64,000 nucleotides of DNA from Guillardia theta CCMP2712 (taxonomy: Eukaryota > Protista > Cryptophyta). The position numbers were made by a program, and so were the translations under genes. The notes beneath the pieces were generated by a model. It was not told where the DNA came from, searched no databases, and saw only the letters and a program-made list of their open reading frames with translations. Position 1 is the first letter of the stretch, and every line of letters starts with the position of its first letter. The stretch covers positions 1 through 64,000 of the forward strand of contig NW_005434664.1 of NCBI RefSeq assembly GCF_000315625.1, in the 5' to 3' direction. Of the stretch, positions 1-4,269 are shown one piece after another.

Positions 1-1235
1 GTGTTGCCGCCGTTGCACAGCCCCTCCATCTCCTTCCTCGTGAAGCGACCAGATGCCGCCGTCGACTTGATGATGATCTTGATCTCCTTGCCGTCCTTGC
101 CGCCTGCCTTCTTCTGCAGTCTTGATGCCTTCTTCAACTTATTTCTGGACACAAAGCGATCGGCTGTCAACTCGACTGCGAGCGCCTCTCTGATCTTCGG
201 GTCCTCGCTGAACAGAGTCAGGTGTACTCCCTCCATCGCTTCGCTCTCTCGGAAAGCTCGAAATGCTGTATCATTCGCCTCTGGGCAGCTCGAGGAGACG
301 ATCCACTCCACCTCCCTCTGTCTCCAGATGACGTTGGCCCCTACAGCGACGAAGCCTTTCTGACCTAAGCCTTTGTGGACTTGCTGGCCTGGCGCCCCAG
401 CGACCAGCATGCCTGCCAGCGGCTGGAGTTGGACCGCTGCAAGGGACTGGCGCAGCAGCTGATAGCGATAGACGGCAGCTATCTCAGCCGTTGTCATGCC
501 GCCCAAGGTTAGCAGGTGAGTCAGCTCTGCCAAGCTGCCCCCTTTGCCCCAGGGTCCTCTCTTGGCTCGAATCTTGAAAGATCGATCGTGCACGATGCTC
601 ACATGTACAGCTGTGAACTTGCGACCATCGATCGCGAAGTCCTCTCTTCCCTGCCAGAGCTTCTCCGCTTGTGCATTGCGGAGGAAGGAAACAGTCACCG
701 GGATCTCCTCAGCACTCGCTATCTCGGGTCTATACGGAGCCTTCCACATGATTGCTTTACTCTCTTGCACTGAGTCTACGATCAGTCCGATCTCTTCAAA
801 TTTCTTCTTCAGCTTTTCTTCATGGTTGACATACACCGAGGAGATGCCCAGGAGAGTCATGGAGATGAAGGAAGTCACCTCGTTGCCTGCTGAGGCGGTG
901 TATGTCTCGACCTTCTCCTTCTTGGCTTCTTCAATCTGCTGCATAAACCACTCTCTGGATGCGTCACTCCATCCAGTCATCGCTTCTTGCAGAAGCTCAC
1001 GTCGTGCCTGCTGACATGTCGAGCGGATGGCTTCTGCGATAGCGTCGGGGGTGCATCCCTCCACAGCCTTGCAAGCCTGGGCTGTCCTGCTGTTCGGATA
1101 ACGCTTCGCGAAGCTCTTCACCCTCTCGACGAGATCAGCTTCGAGGACAGAGGCATCCACAAGTCCGCTCTGCGTGTATTGGCATGATCTCCGATACAGC
1201 AGGTTGCGAACATTTTCATCATACTGAAGAACCAT
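1..1235 (-). CDS. Element ORF, copy A (3' part runs off the window)
   Basis: Same frame as the copy-B ORF, first in-frame ATG at 1235. No stop or indel relative to copy B seen. Confidence 0.8.
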   Translation of the reverse strand, partial: MVLQYDENVRNLLYRRSCQYTQSGLVDASVLEADLVERVKSFAKRYPNSRTAQACKAVEGCTPDAIAEAIRSTCQQARRELLQEAMTGWSDASREWFMQQIEEAKKEKVETYTASAGNEVTSFISMTLLGISSVYVNHEEKLKKKFEEIGLIVDSVQESKAIMWKAPYRPEIASAEEIPVTVSFLRNAQAEKLWQGREDFAIDGRKFTAVHVSIVHDRSFKIRAKRGPWGKGGSLAELTHLLTLGGMTTAEIAAVYRYQLLRQSLAAVQLQPLAGMLVAGAPGQQVHKGLGQKGFVAVGANVIWRQREVEWIVSSSCPEANDTAFRAFRESEAMEGVHLTLFSEDPKIREALAVELTADRFVSRNKLKKASRLQKKAGGKDGKEIKIIIKSTAASGRFTRKEMEGLCNGGN

Positions 1236-1327
1236 ACTTAGAAAGCTATTTGAAGTATACAAACCTCTCGCTTGCAGCTTCCTTGGCGCCCTGGCGGCTT
1301 CCCCTACACCTGGCAAGGGGCCATGCT
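1..1327 (-). mobile_element. Telomere-embedded element, distal copy A (cut by the window edge)
   Basis: Matches 2704-4030 (offset 2703) with 6 substitutions seen. Same junction ...gggccatgct|cctaaa with telomere repeats. Confidence 0.85.
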
Positions 1328-1373
1328 CCTAAACCCTAAACCCTAAACCCTAAACCCTAAACCCTAAACCCTA
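1328..1373 (+). repeat. Telomeric tract (CCCTAAA)n, ~6.5 units
   Basis: CCTAAA + 5x CCCTAAA + CCCTA read directly. Confidence 0.99.
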
Positions 1374-1397
1374 TTATTATTATTATGTGAGTTTATT
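1372..1397 (-). terminator. Polyadenylation signal AATAAA (1397-1392) and (TAA)n tail (1386-1372)
   Basis: + strand reads ccct-attattattattat-gtgag-tttatt. Confidence 0.75.
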
Positions 1398-1548
1398 AGA
1401 ATGCTAGAATGTTGCTCGGCCTCGTTGTGGGCTTGTGCAATTGGATCCTAGTCTAAAGAGGCGCGCGAGCACTGGGAGTACACGGCCTACAATGCGAACC
1501 CTGCTTCTGAGGCGTCTTTCTACTTTCTACTTCTGCTGTCTTCTCTTG

Positions 1549-1756
1549 GCTTCCTCAGCCTCAGTCAGGAGAGTTGCCTCTCCTCACCTTGGCCTTCGGT
1601 CGCCACCTACTCTACCTCCATTCAGCTTCCTCAGCCTCAGTCAGGAGAGTTGCCTCTCCTCACCTTGGCCTTCGGTCGCCACCTACTCGTCCTCCATTCA
1701 GCTTCCTCAGCCTCAGTCAGGAGAGTTGCCTCTCCTCACCTTGGCCTTCGGTCGCC
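1549..1756. repeat. 76-bp tandem repeat, 2.7 copies, in the element 3' UTR
   Basis: Units start at 1549, 1625 and 1701 (gcttcctcagcctcagtcaggagagttgcctctcctcacc...). Each contains the inverted repeat aggagag-ttgc-ctctcct. Confidence 0.97.
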
Positions 1757-1787
1757 TCCTTCCTTCTCTCCTTACCTTGGGCTCAGC

Positions 1788-3938
1788 TCAAGCTCGGTAC
1801 GGGCTCGCCCCGTCTTCTTCCTCGGCGCCCTCGCCTTGCTCTTCCTCCATGTCTTCCTCTTCTTCGTCATCTTCCCTCATCTCCACTCGCAGTCGGTCCT
1901 TCTTGTCCACCTTCAGCGAGCAGGCCAGCACATGCATCTCTGCGAATTTACTCAGTGCTATGAACAGGAAGCTAAGAGATCGACGCTCTATGTCGTCGCT
2001 CTCCGCCTCCTGCTCAAGCTCAGCAGCTGCCGTTGCCCGTGGCGAGAACGCGCTGCCCCTCCTTGCCTTCTTGCTCTCTCCTTGCACGCGAGTCCAGCGC
2101 TTGCTCTGCAGCCACTTCCCCAGCTTCTCCTTGAGAACGTTGCGCCCAACTCCCTGCTCCTCTGGCATCTTCGCCCACTCTCCCAGCGCCATGAACTCCA
2201 GGCTCCCCGGAGAGTAGAAGGTGTCGTGGAGGTTGCCGACGGCCTTGTCCAGGACCAGCTTGATCGGCTCGCTCGTCCCTGCCTCGTTCAAAGAAGCTGC
2301 ATCTTCGATGACTGCTGACAGCTCGCTGACGAGCTGCATGTCCTCTTGGCTTGACGGAGATGCTGCCTCCATTGTGATCCTCTCCAGGTCTGTAAACTCC
2401 AGCCACTCTCCCTCGCTCTCCTCCTGTCGCTGCGCTGCGTCGCTGGTGCCCCGCTGACCAGCCGCCTCAGAGTCAGGCTCCTTGTCGAAGCCGACTGCTT
2501 CGAGCTTGGTTGCTGCGCCTTCGAGATAGAAGGGCAGCTCCTTCATCATGCGTCGAGCATCCTCCGTGGAGCCGAGGAGGATGCATAGCTTGGACCCGTT
2601 CCAGGACTTGGTGTTCAAATCCTCCTCCATGTCGATGCCTTCAACGTTGATCTCGAGCCTGTTAGCGATCTCCAACAAGACTCTCTTGACTCTTGCGATG
2701 GACGTGTTGCCGCCGTTGCACAGCCCCTCCATCTCCTTCCTCGTGAAGCGACCAGTTGCCGCCGTCGACTTGATGATGATCTTGATCTCCTTGCCGTCCT
2801 TGCCGCCTGCCTTCTTCTGCATCCTTGATGCCTTCTTCAACTTATTTCTGGACACAAAGCGATCGGCTGTCAACTCGACTGCGAGCGCCTCTCTGATCTT
2901 CGGGTCCTCGCTGAACAGAGTCAGGTGTACTCCCTCCATCGCTTCGCTCTCTCGGAAAGCTCGAAATGCTGTATCATTCGCCTCTGGGCAGCTCGAGGAG
3001 ACGATCCACTCCACCTCCCTCTGTCTCCAGATGACGTTGGCCCCTACAGCGATGAAGCCTTTCTGACCTAAGCCTTTGTGGACTTGCTGGCCTGGCGCCC
3101 CAGCGACCAGCATGCCTGCCAGCGGCTGGAGTTGGACCGCTGCAAGGGACTGGCGCAGCAGCTGATAGCGATAGACGGCAGCTATCTCAGCCGTTGTCAT
3201 GCCGCCCAAGGTTAGCAGGTGAGTCAGCTCTGCCAAGCTGCCCCCTTTGCCCCAGGGTCCTCTCTTGGCTCGAATCTTGAAAGATCTATCGTGCACGATG
3301 CTCACATGTACAGCTGTGAACTTGCGACCATCGATCGCGAAGTCCTCTCTTCCCTGCCAGAGCTTCTCCGCTTGTGCATTGCGGAGGAAGGAAACAGTCA
3401 CCGGGATCTCCTCAGCACTCGCTATCTCGGGTCTATACGGAGCCTTCCACATGATTGCTTTACTCTCTTGCACTGAGTCTACGATCAGTCCGATCTCTTC
3501 AAATTTCTTCTTCAGCTTTTCTTCATGGTTGACATACACCGAGGAGATGCCCAGGAGAGTCATGGAGATGAAGGAAGTCACCTCGTTGCCTGCTGAGGCG
3601 GTGTATGTCTCGACCTTCTCCTTCTTGGCTTCCTCAATCTGCTGCATAAACCACTCTCTGGATGCGTCACTCCATCCAGTCATCGCTTCTTGCAGAAGCT
3701 CACGTCGTGCCTGCTGACATGTCGAGCGGATGGCTTCTGCGATAGCGTCGGGGGTGCATCCCTCCACAGCCTTGCAAGCCTGGGCTGTCCTGCTGTTCGG
3801 ATAACGCTTCGCGAAGCTCTTCACCCTCTCGACGAGATCAGCTTCGAGGACAGAGGCATCCACAAGTCCGCTCTGCGTGTATTGGCATGATCTCCGATAC
3901 AGCAGGTTGCGAACATTTTCATCATACTGAAGAACCAT
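1788..3938 (-). CDS. Element ORF, putative ORF1/Gag-like nucleic-acid-binding protein (716 aa from first ATG, frame open back to 4031)
   Basis: Long intronless ORF with RRM-like patterns (MTLLGI..EEKLKKKFEEIG..VTVSF..AQAEKL..IDGRKFTAV and LCILLGSTEDARRMMKE), a basic KKASRMQKK patch and an acidic tail. No YxDD RT, APE, GIY-YIG or CCHC motif seen. Confidence 0.75.
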   Translation of the reverse strand: MVLQYDENVRNLLYRRSCQYTQSGLVDASVLEADLVERVKSFAKRYPNSRTAQACKAVEGCTPDAIAEAIRSTCQQARRELLQEAMTGWSDASREWFMQQIEEAKKEKVETYTASAGNEVTSFISMTLLGISSVYVNHEEKLKKKFEEIGLIVDSVQESKAIMWKAPYRPEIASAEEIPVTVSFLRNAQAEKLWQGREDFAIDGRKFTAVHVSIVHDRSFKIRAKRGPWGKGGSLAELTHLLTLGGMTTAEIAAVYRYQLLRQSLAAVQLQPLAGMLVAGAPGQQVHKGLGQKGFIAVGANVIWRQREVEWIVSSSCPEANDTAFRAFRESEAMEGVHLTLFSEDPKIREALAVELTADRFVSRNKLKKASRMQKKAGGKDGKEIKIIIKSTAATGRFTRKEMEGLCNGGNTSIARVKRVLLEIANRLEINVEGIDMEEDLNTKSWNGSKLCILLGSTEDARRMMKELPFYLEGAATKLEAVGFDKEPDSEAAGQRGTSDAAQRQEESEGEWLEFTDLERITMEAASPSSQEDMQLVSELSAVIEDAASLNEAGTSEPIKLVLDKAVGNLHDTFYSPGSLEFMALGEWAKMPEEQGVGRNVLKEKLGKWLQSKRWTRVQGESKKARRGSAFSPRATAAAELEQEAESDDIERRSLSFLFIALSKFAEMHVLACSLKVDKKDRLRVEMREDDEEEEDMEEEQGEGAEEEDGASPYRA

Positions 3939-4030
3939 ACTTAGAAAGCTATTTGAAGTATACAAACCTCTCGCTTGCAGCTTCCTTGGCGCCCTGGCGG
4001 CTTCCCCTACACCTGGCAAGGGGCCATGCT

Positions 4031-4098
4031 CCTAAACCCTAAACCCTAAACCCTAAACCCTAAACCCTAAACCCTAAACCCTAAACCCTAAACCCTAA
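4031..4098 (+). repeat. Telomeric tract (CCCTAAA)n, ~9.7 units
   Basis: CCTAAA + 8x CCCTAAA + CCCTAA. Confidence 0.99.
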
Positions 4099-4102
4099 GA
4101 CG

Positions 4103-4156
4103 GCAGCTTCCTTCGGTCCCCTTGCGCTCTCCCTATGCGCCGCAGAGCAGCATGCT
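4103..4156 (-). mobile_element. Diverged remnant of the element 5' terminus
   Basis: Ungapped 34/54 identity to 3977-4030, with shared ends gcagcttcctt and catgct. Confidence 0.6.
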
Positions 4157-4239
4157 TCTACTAACGGAACGGCGCCTGCCTGAAATAACGGCGCTTGTAC
4201 TAACGGGCCAGTGCCTGTACGAACGGGCCGGTAAACTTG

Positions 4240-4269
4240 AAACCCTAAACCCTACCCTAAACCCTAAAC
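4240..4269 (+). repeat. Innermost degenerate telomeric tract
   Basis: aaaccctaaaccctaccctaaaccctaaac. Confidence 0.95.

Follow-up and report, generated by a model that had tools for sequence, protein, structure and literature searches.

Probable ORF1-only non-LTR retrotransposon units embedded in the telomere repeats of the cryptophyte alga Guillardia theta and probably mobilised in trans by co-resident LINEs

The DNA analysed here (the window) comprises the first 64,000 nucleotides of a contig of Guillardia theta CCMP2712 (G000:C10:1-64000) and opens with an array of retroelement-like units at positions 1-4266 (Table 1). Two units stand head to tail, positions 1-1327 being 99.55% identical to 2704-4030, which gives a period of 2703 bp. 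A first-pass annotation, made from the letters alone, had described these ~2.66 kb units, the pure telomere tracts bounding them (1328-1373 and 4031-4098), and a complete unit with one long intronless ORF, a 3' UTR, AATAAA, and a (TAA)n tail, all of which are located in 1374-4030; its remark that the unit is richer in GC than the neighbouring intron-rich genes likewise holds (55-57% in the first 4 kb vs 40-48% across the rest of the window). The two-unit layout was correct as far as it went, although a third element, the stub at 4099-4241, had been missed. This stub, in which degenerate 5' repeats and ~57 nt from the start of the 5' UTR survive, was assigned by alignment to subfamily 5' ends at two other loci (L008 and L013). 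The distal copy ends at position 1 through the contig start, not through biology.

Table 1. Parts of the telomeric array at the start of the window (positions refer to the window)
Feature	Position	Strand	Remarks
Distal ORF1-only unit, incomplete at contig start	1-1327	(-)	99.55% identity to 2704-4030
Distal unit, ORF1, first 411 codons	1-1235	(-)	
Distal unit, 5' UTR	1236-1327	(-)	5' junction as in complete unit, without 5' repeat
Interstitial telomere tract between the two units	1328-1373	.	6.6 units; TRF, 100% matches
Complete ORF1-only unit	1374-4030	(-)	2657 bp; flanked by two telomere tracts
Complete unit, 3' tail	1374-1385	(-)	(TAA)4; constant phase at entry into telomere repeat
Complete unit, 3' UTR	1386-1787	(-)	
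AATAAA	1392-1397	(-)	Within 3' UTR
Conserved terminal motif and predicted stem-loop	about 1395-1460	(-)	Within 3' UTR
76 bp tandem repeat, 2.8 copies	1549-1760	(-)	Within 3' UTR
Complete unit, ORF1	1788-3938	(-)	716 aa + stop; intronless; counted from conserved ATG
Complete unit, 5' UTR	3939-4030	(-)	7-codon upstream ORF at very start; without 19-nt 5' repeats
Interstitial telomere tract	4031-4098	.	9.7 units, pure 7-nt; TRF
Stub of a third, diverged ORF1-only subfamily	4099-4241	(-)	3'-truncated; capped by tract 4031-4098
Short degenerate telomere tract	4242-4266	.	Proximal array edge

The unit is widespread in the G. theta CCMP2712 genome, where no fewer than 41 copies reach a length of 2.2 kb or more (97-100% identity); they lie at 31 contig ends on 30 contigs, with the sense strand running towards the nearest contig end in 40 of the 41. 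The distribution proposed at first reading, namely copies embedded in telomere repeats at many chromosome ends and in some cases 5'-truncated, was recovered, and the contrary possibility of a merely local assembly duplication is contradicted by the number and spread of these near-identical copies. The window does begin at a contig end, inside a copy, and the tandem pair could on that account be suspected of being a collapsed or duplicated repeat; nevertheless, such an artefact is extremely improbable, and for the family as a whole it is refuted by the copy count (at least 41, over 30 contigs), by the mutual distinctness of all 31 full-length CDS recovered, and by the same architecture on independent public contigs. 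A Hanusia-like contig carries the same telomere-to-5'-end junction. The arrays house a community of two autonomous LINEs with apurinic endonuclease-type (APE) and reverse transcriptase (RT) domains and at least three ORF1-only subfamilies, spread over dozens of chromosome ends; the ORF1-only element is its most abundant member, and the different families are interleaved, in varying order, within single arrays. Contigs C72 and C176 hold inverted arrays.

Copies differ at their ends, and this variation is of the retrotransposition type. Tails range from (TAA)3 to (TAA)8 among 32 3' ends, and the number of 5' repeats per copy ranges from 0 to 39; these 19-21 nt units, each of which opens with AGG, begin directly after the telomere repeat, and the 5' junction points vary and show microhomology. 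Inserted between telomere tracts are a 5'-truncated fragment of 149 nt (at L003) and a tail-only fragment of 6 nt (at L013), other 5'-truncated copies begin at element positions q1748 (at L014) and q1915, and some copies are eroded from the 3' side and then capped by telomere repeats. The phases of the junctions fit a target-site duplication of 0-4 nt, the definition of which is precluded by a target that itself consists of 7-nt repeats. The uniformity of tails and junctions that the first-pass annotation had associated with an ordinary host gene amplified along with subtelomeres is contradicted by these variable ends.

Recombination between telomere tracts surely adds to the spread of the units, and the window pair itself could stem from local duplication or unequal exchange. 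Taken further, the units might be a subtelomeric cassette comparable to yeast Y', spread and homogenised from end to end solely through break-induced replication or recombination of interstitial telomere tracts, without current reverse transcription. The telomere tracts of variable length that separate the units, the 98-99% identity of copies across ends, and the private variants and repeat-less 5' ends common to both window copies would suit such a cassette, and Y' likewise forms tandem, ORF-bearing subtelomeric units with telomere tracts between them. Y', however, encodes a helicase and spreads by recombination, whereas the ORF examined here is a LINE ORF1 homologue that resides together with intact APE- and RT-bearing partners with the same ends; the variable tails, the tail-only and 149 nt inserts, the 5' junctions with microhomology, and the varying order of interleaved families also speak against this alternative, which we regard as unlikely.

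The 2657 bp unit contains a single long sense ORF, intronless in contrast to the intron-rich host genome, and searches of Pfam, PHROGs, and PDB sequences detected no reverse transcriptase or endonuclease within it. Against Pfam, the ORF1 protein gave only one sub-threshold match (HEAT), with neither a CCHC domain nor, at E values up to 1, a Transposase_22 match; searches of PHROGs, PDB sequences, and a protein atlas with ORF1, and of Rfam with positions 1376-4030, likewise returned nothing meaningful. Only 57 proteins emerged when 1.84 billion representatives were searched with a profile, and the five that were checked were all G. theta, Hanusia phi, or metagenome/Logan records; an exact-protein look-up of a subfamily member of 57% identity gave no match. 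An AF2 model built from a 13-sequence alignment was unusable (pLDDT 45), whereas a more diverse alignment yielded a model (pLDDT 66) that matches the four-RRM protein Prp24 (Foldseek E 9e-6) and in which residues 380-491 match many RRMs (Z 7-8.3, rmsd 2.3-3.0). The ORF1 protein thus models as tandem RRM-like domains; neither a nuclease fold nor a nuclease motif was seen in it, which speaks against a restriction-like endonuclease in this ORF.

Intact reading frames are present in 29 of the 31 distinct CDS, as against ~9 broken frames expected under neutrality (P=0.0015) in a mutation simulation seeded with the majority-codon ORF consensus; together with a pN/pS of 0.17 and segregating sites distributed 19/9/52 over the three codon positions, this shows strong purifying selection on ORF1. 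Sequencing runs that contain the element exist, but their RNA origin is only a guess. The transcriptome of Hanusia phi contains proteins for both ORF1 and ORF2, and the ORF1-only sequences, Hanusia phi members included, form a clade apart from the ORF1s that are joined to an ORF2. Given these Hanusia phi members, the ORF1-only lineage appears to be old. Constraint of this kind, with nearly all frames open and a separate clade that extends to Hanusia phi, would also be found in a host gene family that descends from a LINE ORF1, has been domesticated and lost its mobility, and persists in many subtelomeric copies for the sake of its protein, for example a telomere-binding or capping protein. Such selection is equally expected of active retroelement lineages, however, and the units retain the tail, 3' motif, and 5' repeats of a mobile element, are accompanied by truncated, dead-on-arrival copies, and are placed in one orientation between telomere tracts, for which a host gene has no need. 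Domestication is accordingly judged very unlikely.

The best RT matches in the genome also lie at contig ends, in the same orientation as the ORF1-only units. The two autonomous LINE families are here called F1 and F2. A 10.8 kb copy of F1 (C15:1035717-1046528) encodes an ORF1 of 703 aa and, no more than 10 nt beyond it, an ORF2 of 2500 aa with APE (447-630) and RT (1165-1418) domains and a weak C-terminal zf-RVT; at least 4 full-length copies of F1 are open. F2 comprises L057 and G. theta copies of 82-86% aa identity. The partner nuclease is of the Exo_endo_phos (APE) type and lies N-terminal to the RT, and domain searches detected no restriction-like endonuclease (RLE) in the partner elements. 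The partner RT is only 22-28% identical to its nearest named relatives; a word-index search returned only a Hanusia transcript and weak LINE matches, the atlas gave unnamed RT clusters, and R2 and L1 matched with similar strength among PDB entries. By sequence, the window ORF is a LINE ORF1 homologue, aligning end to end with the ORF1 of F1 (29% identity, E 2e-84) and showing 31% identity to that of F2. Because these identities are so low, the ORF1-only element is not a recent deletion derivative of either family.

In its build, F1 resembles the ORF1-only unit, with 19-21 nt 5' repeats, a 3' stem with AATAAA, a trinucleotide tail, and the telomere repeat. The common order at the 3' end is a 17-nt block with AATAAA, 6-8 nt, (TAA)n or (TAC)n, and the telomere repeat in the same phase. 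Only the 17-nt block is common to the ORF1-only element and F1. F2 has the (TAA)n tail as well and agrees at 13 of the 14 nt in front of it, the remaining 3' UTR differing in both cases. MFE folds of three families have the same closing stem, the stem-loop z-scores being weak for two of four families. For the autonomous partner postulated at first reading, an RT- and endonuclease-bearing element with the same last ~400 bp, the arrays do contain candidates whose ORF1 is homologous; the predicted extent of the 3' identity is not borne out, as only ~15-20 terminal nt and the predicted stem are shared.

Taken together, the unit is probably a non-autonomous, ORF1-only non-LTR retrotransposon that is specialised for the telomere repeats of G. 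theta and receives RT and endonuclease in trans, and the 2.66 kb element is most likely copied by the RT of the larger LINEs in the same arrays. Its RNA would encode a protein of ~700 aa with multiple RRM-like domains, which presumably coats that RNA, while the 10-11 kb LINE families (ORF1 plus an ORF2 of 2500 aa) would supply the enzymes. In the telomere repeat, the APE would nick the C-rich strand and thereby prime reverse transcription at the trinucleotide tail beside the conserved 3' stem, so that sense strand and G-strand run on without a break, as in SART, whose sense strand also lies on the G-strand (PMC7265360). The 5' end might then be joined via the AGG that opens each 5' repeat, and telomerase, the gene for which is present in the genome (TERT RBD match), would add repeats distally and cap elements eroded from the 3' side. 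In this scheme, we infer the RNA intermediate, the strand nicked, the RT responsible, and the binding of RNA by the ORF1 protein. Two other routes, copying of the element RNA by telomerase and end priming as in HeT-A, each predict that the antisense strand would lie on the G-strand, contrary to observation. The initial proposal of a telomere-targeted, RT-less element mobilised in trans is largely upheld by the anatomy, the distribution, and the ORF1 homology to autonomous LINEs, with trans-mobilisation itself as the inferred part. Of its suggestion that the element elongates or parasitises chromosome ends, elongation fits less well than parasitism or buffering, since the sense orientation on the G-strand fits endonuclease-dependent insertion into repeats made by telomerase.

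Close parallels are found among insects, whose telomere-specialised retrotransposons are well studied. SART1 and TRAS1 of Bombyx mori (APE-type LINEs of the R1 clade) also insert in fixed phase into telomerase-type repeats in a host that keeps a TERT gene; the orientation of SART is that of the G. theta elements, the partners share the layout of an ORF1 and an APE- and RT-bearing ORF2, and reverse transcription probably needs a 3' UTR element to start. By contrast, the window element lacks an ORF2 and is hosted by a cryptophyte alga, the G. theta tails are (TAA)n or (TAC)n instead of poly(A), the 5' ends bear arrays of 19-21 nt repeats, and the partner ORF2, at about 2500 aa, is twice the usual size. 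With HeT-A, which accompanies TART and TAHRE in Drosophila, the system has in common a Gag/ORF1-only element that dominates head-to-tail telomere arrays and would depend on the RT of co-resident elements. HeT-A, however, joins the chromosome end, its poly(A) pointing towards the centromere, and its host genome lacks telomerase repeats, whereas the G. theta 3' ends point outward and the units sit between telomerase repeats in a genome with a TERT RBD match; there is no sequence homology between the two, and Pfam detects no CCHC Gag motif in the G. theta ORF1.

Further systems match in single traits. HAL1 (half-L1) of mammals is likewise a non-autonomous LINE derivative that kept only ORF1, but it has an L1-type ORF1 (Transposase_22) and dispersed copies, whereas the G. 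theta ORF1 has no Pfam match and the element is telomere-specific. MoTeR1 and MoTeR2 of Magnaporthe oryzae form a telomere-embedded autonomous/non-autonomous pair with short 5' repeats beside the telomere tract and a 3' end that abuts telomere repeats, as in G. theta; the MoTeR1 nuclease is a restriction-like endonuclease, in contrast to the APE domain of the G. theta partners, and the lack of a detected RLE sets these partners apart from RLE telomere elements of the MoTeR and GilM/GilT type. The Drosophila I factor, a LINE, also ends in a short (TAA)n instead of poly(A) but is not telomere-specific.

A literature search yielded no account of retroelements at the telomeres of Guillardia or any other cryptophyte (Repbase and Dfam lay outside its scope), and, to our knowledge, only a few cases exist outside insects, namely Zepp in Chlorella, GilM/GilT in Giardia, and MoTeR in Magnaporthe. 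A bolder reading, which we put forward as conceivable though doubtful, sees in the ORF1-only units an old mutualist lineage, HeT-A-like and dating from before the split of Guillardia and Hanusia, the ORF1 protein of which gives the whole community of telomere LINEs its telomere targeting or capping; arrays and telomerase would then act as a buffer renewed through erosion and re-capping, and the 19-21 nt 5' repeats, which open with AGG, would arise at each insertion from reiterative template jumping onto the telomeric G-strand. If this reading is true, retroelements would have come to assist chromosome ends a second time and independently, here in a telomerase-positive protist.

Finally, G. theta offers an algal parallel to the SART/TRAS and HeT-A/TART systems of insects, in which a SART-like insertion into telomerase repeats is united with an abundant, HeT-A-like Gag-only element. 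Dozens of gene models annotated as 'hypothetical protein' in G. theta are accounted for by these elements, and so are the points at which many contigs stop. As a culturable, telomerase-positive organism, G. theta is a system in which the evolution of telomere-repeat target specificity, the persistence of an RT-less element, and the protection of eroding ends by such arrays can be studied.

The window covers the left end of contig C10, and the parts of its telomeric array are named from the unique sequence outward, which means leftward on the plus strand and in the 5'-to-3' direction of the minus strand (see table). As the first-pass annotation had described, two head-to-tail, near-identical units (99.55% identity, period 2703 bp) are set in telomere repeats, the array is richer in GC than the rest of the window (55-57% vs 40-48%), and the complete unit carries a single long intronless ORF, a 3' UTR, AATAAA and a (TAA)n tail. 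The sense strand of this unit is the G-rich telomere strand, along which a 5' UTR of 92 nt, the ORF, a 3' UTR of 400 nt containing a tandem repeat, and a terminus of AATAAA, 6 nt and (TAA)4 are followed by telomere repeat. By alignment, the stub belongs to the 5' end of a diverged ORF1-only subfamily; it ends approximately 57 nt into the 5' UTR, telomere repeat continuing from there. An upstream ORF of 6-13 codons, with its ATG a few nt from the last 5' repeat, is present in every family, its position being kept and its sequence not.

Features of the telomeric array, the autonomous families F1 and F2, and further loci
Feature	Location	Strand	Remark
Short degenerate telomere tract	window 4242-4266		innermost part of array; adjoins unique sequence
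Stub, 143 bp	window 4099-4241	minus	
Pure telomere tract	window 4031-4098		between stub and complete unit
Complete ORF1-only unit, 2657 bp	window 1374-4030	minus	
Upstream ORF	window 4007-4027	minus	
ORF, 716 aa	window 3938 to 1788	minus	intronless
76 bp tandem repeat	window 1549-1760		3' UTR; 2.8 copies, 97% matches
Second telomere tract	window 1328-1373		between the two units
Second ORF1-only unit	window 1-1327	minus	interrupted by contig start
Upstream ORF, other loci	L033:1299-1322; L057 about 213-248; L060 about 31-72		
Complete F1 element	C15:1035717-1046528		after an ORF1-only unit
F1 5' side			telomere tract, ~29 copies of a 20 nt repeat, 5' UTR
F1 ORF1, 703 aa			ORF2 begins 10 nt later
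F1 ORF2, 2500 aa	residues 447-630; 1165-1418		APE-type endonuclease; RT; weak C-terminal zf-RVT
F1 3' side			500 nt 3' UTR, (TAC)3, telomere repeat
Complete F2, 5' side	L057		ORF1-only-type 3' end, 3 telomere units, one 20 nt 5' unit, F2 ORF1
F2 ORF1, 713 aa	L057		
F2 ORF2, 2575 aa	L057:2443-10170		then (TAA)3 tail, long telomere tract
Peptidase_C48 domain of F2 ORF2	residues 156-270		E 2.8e-9
Weak Peptidase_C48 match	L036:1301-8803, residues 144-256		
Telomerase_RBD match	G000:C21:562211-562372		51 bits
Chimeric insert, 237 nt	L024 (G000:C134:170596-176220)		between telomere tracts
Inverted insert, 13 nt	L017 (G000:C19:2089-7724)		within telomere tract
Wrong-way elements	G000:C72:427489-441117; G000:C176:12304-19806		

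The expectation that copies would lie at many contig ends was borne out by a DNA search of the G. theta CCMP2712 genome (87 Mb, 669 contigs), which gave at least 59 matches to the ORF1-only unit, a lower bound given that part of the candidates were scored. At least 41 of these are 2.2 kb or longer, with 97-100% identity, and are distributed over 30 contigs and 31 contig ends. All but one of the matches on the query strand lie no more than 25 kb from a contig start, and those on the opposite strand all lie no more than 30 kb from a contig end wherever the length is known; the sole exception (C72:438481) lies 17 kb from the right contig end and is directed inward. Given this placement and strand bias, the family is telomere-associated and fixed in orientation, with its 3' end outward. 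On C72, an ORF1-only unit and the ORF2 of an F2 element converge at a distance of 17-31 kb from the contig end, and on C176 an F1 copy close to the left end is directed right; these wrong-way elements may represent end-to-end fusions, inversions or scaffold misjoins.

All 31 full-length coding sequences recovered are distinct and 29 are intact, whereas a neutral simulation with the same substitution numbers predicts approximately 9 broken sequences against the 2 seen (P=0.0015). The pN/pS ratio is 0.17, and variable sites are apportioned 19/9/52 among the three codon positions. A second AlphaFold model of the ORF1 protein (pLDDT 66, pTM 0.48) was matched by Foldseek to yeast Prp24, a four-RRM protein (E 9e-6), the remaining matches also being multi-RRM proteins. 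Many single RRMs can be superposed on residues 380-491 (Z 7-8.3, rmsd 2.3-3.0 over 75-80 residues), and ACT domains, which share the ferredoxin-like fold, score similarly against this segment. The predicted structure thus suggests a multi-RRM-like protein that would bind RNA, in line with known LINE ORF1 proteins.

The strongest genomic matches to RVT_1 lie at contig ends, in the orientation of the ORF1-only unit and within open frames of 2000-2500 aa. They include the family F1, whose RT matches structures of R2 and L1 ORF2 and of which at least four copies retain the full open frame, others being 5'-truncated or interrupted by contig ends. The window ORF aligns over its whole length with F1 ORF1 (29% identity, E 2e-84). 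An F1 element is also found in two ENA "metagenome" contigs (L058 and L059, PRJEB17505, 10.4 kb); its ORF1 is identical to a G. theta copy, so that G. theta, or a strain very close to it, is present in these samples, which do not constitute independent evidence. A second family, F2, is known in complete form from a metagenome contig (L057) and is represented at G. theta contig ends by open frames of up to 2261 aa (82-86% amino acid identity); F1 and F2 share 45% identity in ORF2. N-terminal to its APE and RT domains, F2 ORF2 contains an Ulp1-like cysteine protease domain scoring above the Pfam cut-off, which recurs weakly in L036 (E 0.094 in F1) and which is not known from LINE ORF2s.

In all families, the 5' end consists of an array of 19-21 nt units, family-specific in sequence, each opening with AG(G), and the array directly follows telomere repeat. 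At the 3' end, a 17 nt block including AATAAA is common to the ORF1-only element, F1 and one further family, and the predicted minimum-energy folds of these three share a closing stem around a variable hairpin. Of the 14 nt preceding the tail, 13 are identical between F2 and the ORF1-only element, which also have the (TAA)n tail in common; this being the closest 3'-end match, F2 is regarded with moderate confidence as the likeliest RT source. Candidate partners encoding RT and endonuclease, as anticipated, are present, but the 3' sequence shared with them amounts to these short blocks rather than the last ~400 bp that had been proposed.

Copies vary in tail length (3 to 8 TAA units at 32 3' ends) and in the number of 19 nt 5' units (0 to 39 at 42 5' ends), and 5' junctions mostly fall at one telomere-unit phase, with several elsewhere in the 5' unit, where microhomology is present. 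Inserts that are 5'-truncated yet keep the tail lie between telomere tracts, reduced to the last 149 nt (L003) or to 6 tail nt (L013), and another copy begins at position 1748 of the query unit, preceded by 9 nt of telomere repeat. Such variation in tails, junctions and truncations is indicative of retrotransposition and not of blocks being duplicated. The chimeric insert in L024, in which ~80 nt of F1 3' UTR lies inside ORF1-only type-A 5' repeats, hints at RT template switching between F1 and ORF1-only RNAs. The 13 nt insert in L017 matches a segment of the element's 5' UTR in reverse complement. Copies that are 3'-truncated and then pass into telomere repeat at varying phase (L004, L006, L025, L027 and the window stub) would be the expected remains of chromosome-tip erosion and telomerase healing; the genome probably has a TERT gene, to judge from a single Telomerase_RBD match that exceeds the Pfam cut-off.

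Since the sense strand continues the G-strand, first-strand cDNA would be primed from the C-rich strand, a step that would need an internal nick in that strand, for which the APE domain would be suited. This orientation agrees with the SART arrangement, in which the sense strand likewise lies on the G-strand (PMC7265360). Neither HeT-A-like priming from a terminal 3' overhang nor telomerase copying of element RNA would be consistent with this orientation.

In the ORF1 tree, ORF1s with an ORF2 downstream, from F1, F2 and an additional contig, make up one clade, and the G. theta ORF1-only subfamilies together with Hanusia phi sequences make up the other, the split being supported at 100/99 under midpoint rooting only. 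A Hanusia-like contig opens on telomere repeat abutting AGG, and its ORF1 stop is not followed by an ORF2. Taken together, the tree and this contig suggest that the ORF1-only lineage may be older than the split between Guillardia and Hanusia. No published account of the Guillardia telomere-element system was found in the literature searched. The unit, rightly suspected at the outset of being telomere-specific, is a real and abundant non-LTR element that encodes ORF1 only and for which probable APE+RT partners can be identified.
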